In this document: positions 33,377-54,959 of the stretch, in pieces
Layout of the letters: each line of letters begins with the position of its first letter
Numbering within the stretch: position 1 is the stretch's first letter
Sequence record: NC_070950.1
Reading direction: 5' to 3' (one strand)
DNA: 64,000 nt
Notes under the pieces: model-generated
What the model was told of the DNA's origin: nothing
Databases searched by the model: none
The model's input: the letters and a program-made list of their open reading frames with translations, nothing else
Program-made: the position numbers and the translations under genes

Positions 33377-33390
33377 AATTCAACATGGAG

Positions 33391-33420
33391 TTTTTTATGG
33401 CACTATATAACCGCAGTGTA
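33391..33420 (+). promoter_or_regulatory. candidate early (virion-RNAP) promoter
   Basis: TTTTTT-ATGGCA-CTATAT-AACCGCA-GTGTA; same spacing as the copies at 38440 and 44455. Confidence 0.55.
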
Positions 33421-33463
33421 TGAAAAACAAAATGTTATTTTTAATTTAATAGAGGAAATCATC

Positions 33464-33922
33464 ATGAAACGTTTTATCTCTGCGGCTATTCTTTCCGTTA
33501 TTGCTATGAGCGCTACCGCAACTGAAAATACCAACATCTGGGGCTGCGTCACAAATACAGGCAAAGTCGCTAGAGTCGACTTGGTAGAAGGAGCGGGTGG
33601 CGTTCAGGCGGTCTACACGTTCGGTAAGGCCGGGAGCAATCCAGAGCTCTCCGTTGTCAAGAAACCTTCTGACGTTAAGTATACTGAGAAAGAGGCTTAC
33701 GCCAACGGTATCCTGCAAACCACGTATTACCAGCTGACTTTTAATAACGGACAGTTCAGTTATATCGCTGAACAGTTTAACAAGATCGGGCGTCTTTATG
33801 TGCTCAAGAACGATAAAGTTATTTCGACCATTGAGTGCGAAGACATTATCGATGCCGGTGTTCTCGACAGCGAAAACATGATCAAAATCTTTCCTTACCA
33901 TGAAAAGGTAAAGGATGAATAA
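33464..33922 (+). CDS. secreted/periplasmic protein (152 aa)
   Basis: Start reassigned to the ATG at 33464 (GAGGA SD); Sec signal MKRFISAAILSVIAMSATA; two Cys near the ends of the mature domain. Confidence 0.7.
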   Translation: MKRFISAAILSVIAMSATATENTNIWGCVTNTGKVARVDLVEGAGGVQAVYTFGKAGSNPELSVVKKPSDVKYTEKEAYANGILQTTYYQLTFNNGQFSYIAEQFNKIGRLYVLKNDKVISTIECEDIIDAGVLDSENMIKIFPYHEKVKDE

Positions 33923-33926
33923 ACCT

Positions 33927-33956
33927 CCTACCTCCACCCATAAGGGTGGAGGTAGG
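33927..33956. terminator. bidirectional terminator-like hairpin
   Basis: 13-bp perfect stem CCTACCTCCACCC-ATAA-GGGTGGAGGTAGG between convergent genes; T11 at 33970-33980. Confidence 0.8.
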
Positions 33957-33978
33957 GCAACCTAATTTATTTTTTTTT

Positions 33979-38439: not shown

Positions 38440-38468
38440 TTTTTTAAGGACTATATTATCTCTGGGTA
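38440..38468 (+). promoter_or_regulatory. candidate early (virion-RNAP) promoter
   Basis: TTTTTT-AAGGA-CTATAT-TATCTCT-GGGTA; TATATTAT is one mismatch from the phiKZ early consensus TATATTAC; upstream of the non-virion RNAP operon. Confidence 0.6.
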
Positions 38469-43641: not shown

Positions 43642-43685
43642 CCCCACCATCCTAGAACCATTTAATCGATTAAGTAGTTACTATC

Positions 43686-43714
43686 GGATATCCTTCCTTA
43701 ACGGGAGGGTATCC
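43686..43714 (+). terminator. hairpin (putative terminator)
   Basis: GGATATCCTTCC-TTAAC-GGGAGGGTATCC stem with G-T pairs. Confidence 0.55.
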
Positions 43715-43749
43715 CTTAATAACCATTTCCCACAAAAAAGGAATACGAA

Positions 43750-44385
43750 ATGAATCGTCCAATTTTTAAAATTAGTCAGCACGCGCAGTTGTCGATCCCG
43801 GCCCTCATCGATGTTACAGAAAATGAAGCGGAATGCTCGTCACTTGTTTACGGCCTCCATCCTTCCATGACCGGGGTATTCTCTGAACGCCAGAAGGATT
43901 CAATGGCAGAGAGTCTTTACCTAATGGGTCAGTACGCCGAAATCATTCCCAGGAATAAGCCGGAGTGTACGATTGATTATCATCCCATCACTAACGAGCA
44001 TTACCTTAAATCGTTTAAACATTATTACGAAGCATGGGTTGCTTTGGGTAGAGATGAAGTGGTGATGCAGGGAGCTACTGTTAGGGTTTCGTCGTTTTTA
44101 TTATTAAGGACTATGTTCAATGGGGTCATAGGAATTCTACCTTATCTCGACCCCAAAGGACATCGGATGCAAGCAAAGGAATACGCTAAATTAGACGATT
44201 TGGTTAAACTGACCTACGGCGTGCCCGCTGGGTCATTCTCGGCGACCCCCGATTACCAGGTTGTTCCTAAAATAGAGGTGCGGGAACAGATCGTGATGAG
44301 TTTTACTGACAAATACGGTAATGCAATCACCATCACCGGGAACGACAGAGAAAAGATGATCGAACAGATAGAAAAATTAAAGTAA
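43750..44385 (+). CDS. hypothetical protein (211 aa)
   Basis: AAGGA SD; bounded by hairpins on both sides. Confidence 0.7.
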   Translation: MNRPIFKISQHAQLSIPALIDVTENEAECSSLVYGLHPSMTGVFSERQKDSMAESLYLMGQYAEIIPRNKPECTIDYHPITNEHYLKSFKHYYEAWVALGRDEVVMQGATVRVSSFLLLRTMFNGVIGILPYLDPKGHRMQAKEYAKLDDLVKLTYGVPAGSFSATPDYQVVPKIEVREQIVMSFTDKYGNAITITGNDREKMIEQIEKLK

Positions 44386-44391
44386 TCGTCT

Positions 44392-44423
44392 TCCCTACCA
44401 CTCCTTAACTGGGGTGGTAGGGA
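44392..44423 (+). terminator. terminator hairpin
   Basis: TCCCTACCACTCC-TTAACT-GGGGTGGTAGGGA, T-rich tract about 15 nt downstream. Confidence 0.7.
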
Positions 44424-44454
44424 GTAAGAAAGCTTTAATTTTTTAACATGAAGA

Positions 44455-44483
44455 TTTTTATAAGTCGATATCATTCAGGTGTA
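44455..44483 (+). promoter_or_regulatory. candidate early promoter upstream of glycine-zipper cluster
   Basis: TTTTT-ATAAGT-CGATAT-CATTCAG-GTGTA; same spacing as the 33391 copy. Confidence 0.5.
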
Positions 44484-44527
44484 TAAACAACAAGTATTTT
44501 AATTCTTATTCACTAAAGAGGTCCAAA

Positions 44528-45100
44528 ATGGAAATTCGTAAAGATATGATCAATGAAATCGCTGCTCGTATCATCTCTGGTTGCAACGACGTGGAAGCCA
44601 GTGTCCGCGAAAAGCTGCTGCGTAATTTGGTTAATGGTGAGATCTGGCAGTTCGAGCTCAATGAAACTGAGCAAGCGGAACTGATCGCGATCGTAAGCAA
44701 AGAGTTCGGTATTTCCGATCTGGTCTACGTCGAACCGCAGAAAAACATTTCTGAAGAAGATGTCGCCAAAGTCGCCGCCAGTGTTAACGGGCATGTCGAA
44801 CACAAATATCTGAATCTGCGAAATGCGATGGCGGTCGGTGCAGTACTCGGTGCTGGCGCGGCCATCTTAAAAGAAGGTGCGAACGCAATTAATGCCGGCG
44901 CTGGTGTGGTCGGCGCTGCTGTTTCTTACGGCGTGGGTTATCTGGCTGACAAGAAACAGATCGGTATGGGTAATCAGTACGCTGATGTCGCGGCAGGTAT
45001 TGTTGCCGGTGGCGTTATCGGTGGCGGCGCTGTATTTGGCGCGGGCTTTGTCGCCAAACGTTTCTTCAGCAATGAAGAAGTTGAAGTTGTTGCAGAGTAA
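44528..45100 (+). CDS. glycine-zipper membrane protein 1 (190 aa)
   Basis: GAGG SD; soluble N-terminal half then G-x-x-x-G-rich hydrophobic helices. Confidence 0.75.
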   Translation: MEIRKDMINEIAARIISGCNDVEASVREKLLRNLVNGEIWQFELNETEQAELIAIVSKEFGISDLVYVEPQKNISEEDVAKVAASVNGHVEHKYLNLRNAMAVGAVLGAGAAILKEGANAINAGAGVVGAAVSYGVGYLADKKQIGMGNQYADVAAGIVAGGVIGGGAVFGAGFVAKRFFSNEEVEVVAE

Positions 45101-45163
45101 TAAACGCATCTGAAATATCCGATGCATCTTAAATTAAACTATCAATAGTAAGGAAATACGATC

Positions 45164-45556
45164 ATGAAAAAAGAAAACACTGAACTGACTGGCGCTGAAC
45201 TCGACGAAGCTAAAGCAATGCTGGCTGTTGATGCAGAAACTTCCCTGTTCGACGACATCTGTGAAAAACTCGGTGGCTACGTAGCTACCGACAAACAGAA
45301 AAGCCACGTGAAAGCCGCAGTGATCGGTGGTGTTATCGGCACCGCTCTGAGCATGGCGACCAAACCGTCGGTCGGGACACTGGTCGGTGGCGTGGTTGGT
45401 ACCGCAGGCGGAGCTTATATCGGTAGCCGTCTCGCCGATGATCTGAGCGATCGTTTCATTGACAAACTACTCACCGGTGACATCGGCTTCGTGTGTAGCG
45501 CTATCGGCGCATCCATCGGCGGGGCATTAACCCCGAGCAAAGTCGAAGCGGACTAA
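45164..45556 (+). CDS. glycine-zipper membrane protein 2 (130 aa)
   Basis: AAGGA SD; AVIGGVIG and GTLVGGVVGTAGGAYIG helices. Confidence 0.75.
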   Translation: MKKENTELTGAELDEAKAMLAVDAETSLFDDICEKLGGYVATDKQKSHVKAAVIGGVIGTALSMATKPSVGTLVGGVVGTAGGAYIGSRLADDLSDRFIDKLLTGDIGFVCSAIGASIGGALTPSKVEAD

Positions 45557-45624
45557 ATCATCCAGTTCGTTCCACTATCGTTAAATTTTAGGCAACTCAA
45601 CATCAAAACGTAAGAGGTAATATC

Positions 45625-46020
45625 ATGGATATGGCAAACAAACCTGCAGTTAACAAAGCTACCTTGTCAGAAGAAGAAATTCTGAAAATGCTGGCTGGTC
45701 ACAAATCCACCGATGCCAACTATCGCGTTGGTCGAATCGCTGGTGTGCTGGGCGCAGTCGTCGGCGGCGCACATCGCACTATCACTCAAGGCATCAAACC
45801 ATCAACTGTCGTCGGCGCAGTCGTCGGCGGATTAGTTGGATACAAAACCGGCAAGCTTGCGGATGGCTTCAGTGGCCTGACGGGAACGCATTCCCCGATC
45901 GCAGATGTCGGCGCATTCACGGCAGGTTACGGCGTGACTCTGGGCATGAGCGCCCTGGCGGCCACCTTCGATCAGTACATCACACCGCTGTACGAATCAG
46001 AAGAAGAAACCGAAGAATAA
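45625..46020 (+). CDS. glycine-zipper membrane protein 3 (131 aa)
   Basis: GAGGT SD; AGVLGAVVGG and VVGAVVGGLVG helices; acidic tail. Confidence 0.75.
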   Translation: MDMANKPAVNKATLSEEEILKMLAGHKSTDANYRVGRIAGVLGAVVGGAHRTITQGIKPSTVVGAVVGGLVGYKTGKLADGFSGLTGTHSPIADVGAFTAGYGVTLGMSALAATFDQYITPLYESEEETEE

Positions 46021-46026
46021 GAAAGT

Positions 46027-46058
46027 TAACTCCTCTACCCTTACGGGTAGAGGAGTTA
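46027..46058. terminator. bidirectional terminator-like hairpin
   Basis: 14-bp perfect stem TAACTCCTCTACCC-TTAC-GGGTAGAGGAGTTA between convergent genes. Confidence 0.8.
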
Positions 46059-46075
46059 CTTAATTACTTATTTTT

Positions 46076-54166: not shown

Positions 54167-54700
54167 TTATTTTTGCTCGGTAGTCGTCGAAGAAGTGACT
54201 TTCGTTACAACAGATTTAGTTGCTGCTTTGGCTTTGGTCATTAGGAATTTAGGATCAAAGACATTGACCGTTCCTGAAGCCTGATCGACAATTTGATCAA
54301 TGTTGCCGAGTAGGCCTTTGATGGCAACTTGCGAAGCATAAACCAAATCGTTGGCGTTATCTAAATCCCTCGTAGTCGTAATAAGTTTTAAACGAGTGAG
54401 CTTGTAGCATCTAACATAGTCAGTATTCTGATCCAAGCAATCATTCGCCTTAAGCCATTCATCGAGTACGATGAGTTGACTAATTGGCTCTACCGGATTA
54501 TCAGAAACGAGTTCCTTTGGGACGGTATGGGCGGCTTCTTTCAATTGCTGAAGATTGATTCCCATACTACTGACTTGAGCGGCTTGAGCCTCCACCTGAA
54601 GTTTGGTGTTGGCTTCGCTGACTGTGGTCTTGTGGCTGCACCCCGTCACTAAGATCATCAGCGCCGTAACGGCTAAGCATTTCATTATACGTTTTTTCAC
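54167..54700 (-). CDS. outer-membrane lipoprotein, o-spanin (Rz1-like), 177 aa
   Basis: GTG start with GAGG SD; lipobox LVTG-C21; start embedded in the 3' end of the i-spanin gene. Confidence 0.7.
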   Translation of the reverse strand: MKKRIMKCLAVTALMILVTGCSHKTTVSEANTKLQVEAQAAQVSSMGINLQQLKEAAHTVPKELVSDNPVEPISQLIVLDEWLKANDCLDQNTDYVRCYKLTRLKLITTTRDLDNANDLVYASQVAIKGLLGNIDQIVDQASGTVNVFDPKFLMTKAKAATKSVVTKVTSSTTTEQK

Positions 54701-54959
54701 GATCTTGACCTCGACGATCTAACATAAGAGCAAGTTGAGCGTTAAGTTTAGTTTGGCTGGCTGTGGAGACCTCGATAGCCTCCCGTAAACTCTTCATTTG
54801 GTCAGTGATTTTTGCCATCTGACCCACGGTTTCTTGATCGACTGTATCCTTAGGGAAAAACCGATTAACCCCAAGAATAATCATGATGACCAATAATAAT
54901 AAAATAACGATCCCATCTTTAACTACACTTCCGACATTATCTTTAGTAATAACCGACAT
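54567..54959 (-). CDS. inner-membrane spanin, i-spanin (Rz-like), 130 aa
   Basis: Single N-terminal TM GIVILLLLVIMIILGV then predicted coiled coil; 134-nt overlap with the lipoprotein gene. Confidence 0.7.
   Translation of the reverse strand: MSVITKDNVGSVVKDGIVILLLLVIMIILGVNRFFPKDTVDQETVGQMAKITDQMKSLREAIEVSTASQTKLNAQLALMLDRRGQDREKTYNEMLSRYGADDLSDGVQPQDHSQRSQHQTSGGGSSRSSQ

Follow-up and report, generated by a model that had tools for sequence, protein, structure and literature searches.

Klebsiella phage Miami carries, in the 64,000-nt stretch of its genome analysed here (the window; record NC_070950.1), a cassette of three adjacent genes, gp041, gp042 and gp043 (44455–46058), whose products are by profile comparison true paralogues: three diverged copies of one small phage protein. 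The copies are under purifying selection as judged from their substitution ratios, they keep the order A, B, C in diverged relatives, and they stand behind a promoter element and at a genomic position that recur across genera. Together they make up a lineage-specific accessory family, not a demonstrated new system. The predicted three-helix fold and the glycine-rich, weakly hydrophobic character of the helices lead us to favour, tentatively, a mixed oligomer that would be made early and would act at the host inner membrane. The window matches bases 1–64000 of Miami (NC_070950/MT701590) at 100% identity, and window coordinates are genome coordinates. Miami, a jumbo myophage of 253 kb, belongs to the nucleus-forming phages that encode chimallin; its nearest named kin are the Erwinia phages RisingSun and Joad and the Vibrio Aphroditevirus phages (PMC7844079; PMC10299810).

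All three genes lie on the + strand, and each is labelled 'hypothetical protein' in the record. Open reading frames (ORFs) and annotation agree on the A-type gene gp041 (44528–45100, 190 aa), the B-type gene gp042 (45164–45556, 130 aa) and the C-type gene gp043 (45625–46020, 131 aa). A purine-rich site resembling a Shine-Dalgarno (SD) sequence lies 7–10 nt 5′ of each ATG: AGAGG at 44518–44522 for gp041, AAGGA at 45151–45154 for gp042 and AGAGG at 45614–45618 for gp043, all on the + strand, seen in the sequence and annotated as ribosome-binding sites. The gp041 protein begins with a soluble region of ~95 aa, followed by Gly/Ala-rich helices at residues ~98–116, 117–141 and 152–177 and an acidic tail; in gp042 the helices fall at ~49–66, 68–91 and 104–123. 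Shared motifs are GYLAD (gp041), SRLAD (gp042) and GKLAD (gp043), and KPS, in the turn before helix 2, in both gp042 and gp043. The acidic tails read EEVEVVAE, SKVEAD and SEEETEE, in gene order. The N-termini are hydrophilic and charged, without hydrophobic leader, signal peptide or lipobox. An initial annotation, made from the letters of the window alone, had already described the three ORFs with their SD sites, the motifs, the GxxxG helices and the absence of signal peptides, and all of these are borne out.

That annotation had also called the proteins paralogues with a common layout of three helices and an acidic tail. Pairwise BLAST among the three is weak (E 8e-4 to 0.2), so paralogy was tested by profiles. 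Separate A-, B- and C-type alignments were built from the genuine relatives found by profile search (below) and from their contigs. With hhalign, C matches B at a probability of 97.7% (E 1.6e-12), C matches A at 96.5% (E 7.5e-10) and B matches A at 97.0% (E 8e-11). Compositional bias was the motive for a control with column-shuffled targets, used for the C-type comparisons with B, with A and with the RisingSun and EL proteins introduced below. The scores of 68 (C vs B) and 52 (C vs A) stand against a null mean of ~11–12 and a maximum of 28 in 60 shuffles, a control that is somewhat lenient in that column shuffling destroys segment structure as well as order. By these profile comparisons, which beat the shuffled controls, the three proteins are true paralogues, as had been proposed.

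The three genes are intact in 6/6 Miami-like genomes. Across these six the ratio of nonsynonymous to synonymous substitution rates (dN/dS) is 0.057 for gp041, 0.154 for gp042 and 0.080 for gp043, compared with 0.271 for the neighbour gp040; by this measure gp041–gp043 are real genes under purifying selection. No gene nearby varies more than gp040 itself (43750–44385, 211 aa): proteins of different length take its place in two of the diverged contigs described next (L018 and L020), and Pfam, PHROGs, NCBIfam and PADLOC all fail to assign it to a family.

Sequence searches place the family in a narrow lineage. A tblastn search of each protein against 50,697 phage records returned six Miami-like genomes and no others, and word-indexed searches of 5.8 billion proteins returned near-identical sequences only. 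A profile search of 1.84 billion representative proteins gave 12 matches, nine of them genuine relatives, all Miami-like; the other three, long proteins, were rejected as compositional false positives after a Pfam scan identified fn3/Ig-repeat proteins. A scan of IMG/VR with the C-type alignment found nothing. Orthologues of gp041 are P0007, P0015, a 204-aa protein of L018 and a 235-aa protein of L020. One of the database entries deserves a look in its own right: 'Stenotrophomonas phage BUCTxx100' (OR529409.1, 12365–13501) is ~95% identical to Klebsiella Miami-like phages across the region and has a 'mobile element protein' gene between its gp039 and gp040 homologues, so that both the host label and the insertion merit checking.

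Three diverged metagenomic contigs (L017, L018 and L020) keep the order A (195–235 aa), B (98–127 aa), C (126–144 aa). Their context is also kept: the β subunit of the non-virion RNA polymerase (nvRNAP), a gp039-like gene, one variable gene, the A-B-C set and a convergent virion gene of ~970 aa. Because the order is the same in three diverged contigs, the triplet is old and ordered and not a recent duplication. The C-terminal tails in L020 and L018 are more alike within a genome than across genomes: PL(N/S)(E/Q)L(S/N)W closes every one of the three paralogues in L020 (4772–6435), and PAE(A) closes two of them in L018. This within-genome likeness suggests, from the tail sequences, a shared partner or co-assembly, and the retained ordered set would fit a hetero-oligomer or divided roles.

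In other genera the corresponding slot was located by anchoring on homologues of gp039 and nvRNAP β. RisingSun has one protein there, gp87 (123 aa), which shows the three-helix glycine layout together with a GGMADG motif; in EL the gene for the 118-aa gp82 opens a run of at least a dozen small accessory genes; and pTD1 has two such proteins, gp058 and gp057. N1M2 and OBP have a looser, Ala/Ser-rich version of 211–220 aa as the last gene before the convergent virion gene, and no such protein occupies the slot in PhiPA3 and Goslar. The distribution among nucleus-forming phages, which the initial annotation had named as something to check, therefore takes in Miami-like phages, RisingSun, EL, pTD1, N1M2 and OBP, with PhiPA3 and Goslar outside it. 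The C-type profile matches RisingSun gp87 at 89.6% (E 2e-6, score 40) and EL gp82 at 82% (E 1e-5, score 35), against a shuffled maximum of 21 for these comparisons; its match to pTD1 gp058, at 41%, is suggestive only. BLAST and HMMER link none of the genus versions to one another, and on this evidence the slot proteins are fast-diverging, each genus having its own version.

Structure prediction bears on the same relationship. The AlphaFold2 (AF2) model of gp043, from a 6-sequence alignment, has a mean predicted local distance difference test score (pLDDT) of 72 and a predicted template modelling score (pTM) of 0.62, with three long helices (35–55, 59–86 and 91–124) at pLDDT 76–91; the single-sequence AF2 model of gp041 did not resolve the N-terminal domain (pLDDT below 50). 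In a Foldseek search of predicted viral structures with the gp043 model, the best non-self matches are the 118-aa EL protein (E 2.6e-3) and the 123-aa RisingSun protein (E 2.2e-2), with probability 1.00. Because profile and Foldseek results independently agree, we take the EL and RisingSun slot proteins to be homologous to the Miami set; gp87 and gp82 share with it synteny, the upstream promoter element and similarity of profile and fold.

That promoter element is the second feature conserved across genera. Upstream of gp041, cross-genus alignment and a position weight matrix (PWM) define an element at 44433–44488 on the + strand, consisting of a T-run, AACATGAAGATTTTTAT, the core TCGATATCATTC (44466–44476) and GTGTATAAAC. 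The general pattern of ~55 nt is a T-run, AAC.T..AGTT.TTT, the core C(T/G)ATAT.A.C and then G(T/G)GTATAA. It aligns 5′ of Miami gp041 and of the A-type genes of L017, L018 and L020, and also 5′ of RisingSun gp87, EL gp82, pTD1 gp058, N1M2 gp104 and OBP gp131. The gp041 core belongs to a phage-wide Miami motif, CTATATTATCT, which the depositors of EL label 'putative phage promoter'. The motif takes the form CTATATTATCT(N4-6)G with a T-run ahead of it and is found in the window at 38449–38468, 5′ of gp037–gp038 (the nvRNAP β operon); further CTATATTATCT sites in the Miami genome are at 73747, 107035, 112666, 115124, 128340, 136530 and 149621. Strong intergenic copies precede gp037–gp038, gp062 and several arrays of small genes. 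A fixed PWM was trained on eight strong Miami sites other than that of gp041, the site 5′ of gp037–gp038 among them; an iterated version was dropped because it drifted into coding-sequence noise. With the fixed matrix the gp041 site scores 15.3 bits, a value reached at 14 of ~308,000 positions, eight of which are the training sites. The full 17-nt motif AACATGNAGNTTTTTAT was also considered as a general promoter and rejected, having two copies only in 154 kb.

A sigma-70 scan found no site 5′ of gp041, which is unsurprising in a phage with RNA polymerases of its own. In jumbo phages that encode RNA polymerases, a bioinformatically detectable AT-rich motif is the early promoter of the virion RNA polymerase, and late promoters show only TATG (PMC7598289). 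A polymerase subunit gene must be transcribed before that polymerase exists, so the nvRNAP β promoter should be early, and as gp041–gp043 share its promoter class it is a reasonable inference from sequence that they too are made early. The CTATATTATCT motif is then probably the virion-RNA polymerase (early) promoter of the clade. The 'early-type promoter' of the initial annotation holds as a conserved element of the nvRNAP-β class, and it is this class that suggests the word 'early'.

The promoter module of gp041, with its 5′ untranslated region, has one other copy in 154 kb, 5′ of gp033 (~65% identity over 90 nt). The gp033 protein (33464–33922, 152 aa) has a clear N-terminal signal peptide and is envelope-directed, and the record mentions a bacterial (Lelliottia) homologue. 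Its cassette (33382–33978) is closed by its own bidirectional terminator (33923–33978) inside the structural block, and forms a second insulated, envelope-directed unit there.

The gp041–gp043 cassette is likewise bounded. Downstream, a bidirectional intrinsic terminator (46027–46058; 14-bp stem with seven G-C pairs) is common to gp043 and to the convergent gp044, which encodes a virion structural protein; the record annotates a terminator at 46030–46057, and comparable hairpins follow the C-type gene in L017 and L018. Upstream, a hairpin read from the sequence 3′ of gp040 (44391–44424, + strand; 11-bp stem with a distal T-run at 44439–44444) is almost invariant among the six Miami-like genomes. 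A simple terminator scan did not call it because the T-run does not adjoin the stem. Since the two hairpins flank the cassette, the unit is insulated on both sides, and the earlier description of a self-contained unit with a closing terminator is sound. A third, small hairpin (GCATC...GATGC, 45106–45125, + strand, seven predicted pairs) occupies the gap between gp041 and gp042. One of its base pairs has a compensatory change in Raoultella phage VB_ZK_P1, and the more distant L017 does not keep the hairpin; on this weak evidence it may serve RNA stability or processing, or have no role at all.

The position of the cassette raises the question of whether its products travel in the virion. Glycine-zipper segments of tape measure proteins have been proposed to insert in the host membrane as a conduit, and gp041–gp043 might similarly be ejection proteins, packaged and released at infection, with zippers that insert in the host membrane to help form the conduit for DNA and protein. 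The genes around the cassette do make up a structural block, with gp036 for the major head protein and gp044 and gp045 for virion structural proteins, and gp042 has weak PHROG matches to hydrophobic segments of tape measure families. That block is core block 5 of Prichard et al. (PMC10299810). The PHROG matches are non-significant, however (E 0.08–0.23, covering the zipper segment only), and proteins of 130–190 aa are unlike a tape measure, which is a long (>600 aa) coiled-coil protein in the tail module. The cassette moreover has its own promoter, of the class that serves the nvRNAP operon and arrays of small non-structural genes, and the hairpins insulate it on both sides. The RisingSun, OBP and N1M2 orthologues are called 'hypothetical' where their neighbours are labelled 'virion structural protein'. 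Finally, the interval from the nvRNAP-β/gp039 block to the convergent virion gene is an accessory-gene hot spot: it holds one gene in RisingSun and in Goslar, four each in Miami (window 43642–46075), N1M2 and OBP, six in pTD1 and a dozen or more in EL (gp82–gp93, L004:7920–13884), where at least a dozen are small and unrelated. Carriage in the virion is for these reasons improbable.

The helices themselves are unusual. Each protein has three uncharged stretches of 15–24 residues, composed to 47–62% of Gly, Ala, Ser and Thr, with 5–6 GxxxG motifs per protein and a helix-turn-helix bearing a GxxxGxxxG ladder. In the C-type family the alignment columns invariant throughout (gp043 numbering) include R37, the zipper G64/G68/G72/G76/D80 and S90-P91; the invariant Arg before helix 1 and Asp after helix 2 would meet at the open end of the hairpin. 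Glycines fall on one helical face in gp042 and gp043 (index 0.55–0.76). The hydrophobic moment is very low (0.04–0.24) and the Eisenberg mean hydrophobicity is 0.28–0.63. The helices are thus only marginally hydrophobic, and resemble signal-anchor-release (SAR)-type or glycine-zipper segments at the edge of membrane solubility more than classical anchors. Sub-threshold family matches are consistently to glycine-zipper hairpin families.

A soluble cytoplasmic bundle, in which the Gly/Ala faces pack together, the acidic tails dock a partner and the membrane plays no part, would account for the positive insertion energy of every helix and the modest hydrophobicity, and the within-genome likeness of the tails (PL.EL.W in L020, PAE in L018) resembles that of docking peptides. 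The record, too, gives the proteins no membrane label though TMHMM was part of the annotation workflow. We nevertheless consider this reading distinctly unlikely: uncharged runs of 20–24 residues with so low a hydrophobic moment are unusual in soluble helices, the glycine ladder at i+4 spacing does not vary, every one of the nearest family models is a membrane hairpin, and small membrane proteins are the best fold matches beyond the family itself.

In the explanation we prefer, which we consider possible rather than probable, the A, B and C proteins form, early in infection, a hetero-oligomer of holin- or viroporin-like character that binds the inner membrane from its cytoplasmic side and alters its permeability, potential or accessibility. 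Its nearest analogues in function would be early superinfection-exclusion proteins and oligomers of the holin or viroporin kind. The three genes would be co-transcribed as one unit from the conserved phage-specific promoter, early and most likely by the virion RNA polymerase. Without signal peptides, the proteins would be made in the cytoplasm. Their weakly hydrophobic, uncharged helices, with glycine on one face, would then associate with the inner membrane from its inner side, and glycine-zipper packing would join them in a mixed A/B/C oligomer, in the manner of holin- and viroporin-like proteins or SAR-type helices. The outcome may be an early change in the permeability or potential of the membrane, or in the access of a second phage's DNA-entry machinery, as in superinfection exclusion. 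The envelope-directed nature of gp033, the other carrier of the promoter module, is a contextual point in favour, and weak fold matches to small phage holins (probability 0.89–0.99) point the same way. The initial annotation had likewise proposed a hetero-oligomeric membrane complex; the retention of three types in order by diverged relatives fits the oligomer, and insertion in the membrane, given helices so marginally hydrophobic, is the part that is not established.

Several results weigh against this preferred explanation. The best 19-residue free energies (dG) on the Hessa scale are +2.5 kcal/mol for gp041, +3.7 for gp043 and +5.5 for gp042, whereas ~20 small Miami proteins with clear membrane anchors have values of −6.8 to +1 kcal/mol. 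In Pfam, gp042 stays below the cutoff for Gly-zipper_YMGG PF13441 (23.7 against 28.9 bits), Gly-zipper_Omp PF13488 (22.2 against 25) and Rick_17kDa_Anti PF05433 (16.3 against 24.2), gp043 does so for PF05433 (17.5 against 24.2), and gp041 has no Pfam glycine-zipper match. Among 12 family members scanned against the glycine-zipper models, 0/12 reach cutoff, and the NCBIfam YiaD glycine zipper gives 19 bits against a cutoff of 175. The family alignments of all three types, searched as profiles against PDB sequences, had no match below E 0.02 and none that made biological sense; a fold search of the PDB with the gp043 model had none below E 1. The promoter core of gp041 is a weak variant of the consensus. 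Promoters of this class may also not be confined to early genes, since the strongest copy lies ahead of the transglycosylase gene gp062. The Miami depositors used TMHMM in annotation (PMC7844079), yet gp041–gp043 went without a membrane label. A literature search found no paper on these proteins or their orthologues, and no expression, localisation or interaction results for any member.

The strong gp062 promoter also brings in lysis. If the three proteins were a holin or pinholin, they would accumulate in the inner membrane until small, timed holes depolarised it and released a membrane-tethered transglycosylase. No holin is annotated in Miami, while spanins (i- and o-; 54167–54959, − strand) and the transglycosylase are. 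The latter (gp062, 73827–74495) has an N-terminal hydrophobic segment at residues 4–22 (dG −0.04) that suggests a signal- or SAR-anchored lysin. Helices rich in Gly, Ala, Ser and Thr are reminiscent of SAR and pinholin helices, the latter exemplified by S68 of phage 21. The next fold neighbours of the gp043 model outside the family are small phage holins, including the LydA type and PR772 P35, at probabilities of 0.5–0.99. These matches, at E 0.16–2, are non-significant and of a kind that any three-helix protein could give, which counts against our own holin-like comparison as well as against a lysis role, and gp041–gp043 have no holin family match in PHROG or Pfam. The tails are acidic and not basic, and N-terminal soluble regions of 35–95 aa are atypical of class I–III holins. 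Nor is the cassette next to the lysis genes: the spanins are 8 kb away and gp062 28 kb, and its direct neighbours are gp040 and a gene for a virion structural protein. The promoter class of the cassette implies early synthesis, and ~20 other small Miami proteins, equally unassigned, have far better transmembrane helices. A lysis role seems unlikely.

Other membrane or defence functions find less in the data. The class II bacteriocin family Bacteriocin_IIc PF10439 gives 14.6 and 14.1 bits against a cutoff of 27.1, and the proteins lack a double-glycine leader and are two to three times the usual length. PADLOC models give no match at E <= 0.1 for gp040–gp043. Processing of the acidic tails by the prohead protease was considered and dropped, as the tail ends fit no single consistent motif.

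The initial annotation had gone further, to the early phage infection (EPI) vesicle of phiKZ-like phages and to a 'new system'. Channel or scaffold subunits might enter the EPI vesicle or the adjacent inner membrane from the cytoplasmic side, in the first minutes of infection, and there make an opening through which mRNA is exported or the genome passes to the nascent phage nucleus; a dedicated glycine-zipper protein would then do in the EL/RisingSun/Miami branch what phiKZ-type phages achieve by other means. The mRNA export step is called an open question in a preprint on the vesicle (10.1101/2024.03.24.586471). The link to phiKZ-like phages is weakened by the slots of PhiPA3 and Goslar, which lack the protein, and by the profile search, which found Miami-like members only; we regard a vesicle role as very improbable indeed. 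'New system' is too strong a term: the proteins are small, their family is confined to one lineage, and no enzymatic or sensing partner goes with them.

Nucleus-forming jumbo phages are much studied, yet to our knowledge almost nothing is known of phage proteins that act early on host membranes. The cassette offers a concrete candidate family, traceable by its conserved promoter through at least six genera (Miami-like, RisingSun, EL, pTD1, N1M2 and OBP). Were the proteins to act on the membrane, differences between clades in superinfection exclusion, membrane energetics or lysis control might be traced to them; were they soluble, the finding would shrink to one more small accessory family. As a marker of one transcription class across genera, the ~55-nt promoter element has a use of its own.

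The closest comparison is with the slot proteins of other genera. EL gp82, RisingSun/Joad gp87, pTD1 gp057/gp058 and, loosely, N1M2 gp104 and OBP gp131 have the same slot, the ~55-nt element and three Gly/Ala-rich helices. They are single or double copies where Miami has an ordered A/B/C triplet, and the N1M2 and OBP versions are Ala/Ser-rich and not Gly-rich. Outside the phages, the outer-membrane lipoprotein zippers (PF13441, PF13488, PF05433 SlyB-Pcp and NCBIfam YiaD) are the only family models that match at all; they share the helix-turn-helix, the GxxxG ladders and the weakly hydrophobic, uncharged helices of ~16–22 residues. The phage proteins differ from them in scoring below cutoff, in having no lipobox or signal peptide and not being exported, and in their third helix, acidic tail and N-terminal soluble region.

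Small holins and pinholins (LydA-type, PR772 P35, phage 21 S68) are inner-membrane oligomers of ~100–130 aa with two or three helices rich in small residues. Unlike these, the cassette proteins have acidic tails and long N-terminal soluble domains, are not beside the lysin or spanins, and follow an early-looking promoter; their hydrophobicity is well below that of typical holin transmembrane helices, and there is no significant match in sequence or fold. Imm and Sp of T4 are early superinfection-exclusion membrane proteins of lytic phages, and gp15 of HK97 is the product of an insulated moron gene. With these our family has in common small size, fast divergence, a promoter of its own and insulation by terminators in conserved blocks, and would also share an accessory role directed at the envelope. 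Imm, Sp and HK97 gp15 have classical transmembrane helices or signal sequences, and no similarity of sequence or structure to them was detected. Small glycine-zipper helical proteins as a kind are already many; the new elements here are the ordered triplet and the conservation of its promoter across genera.

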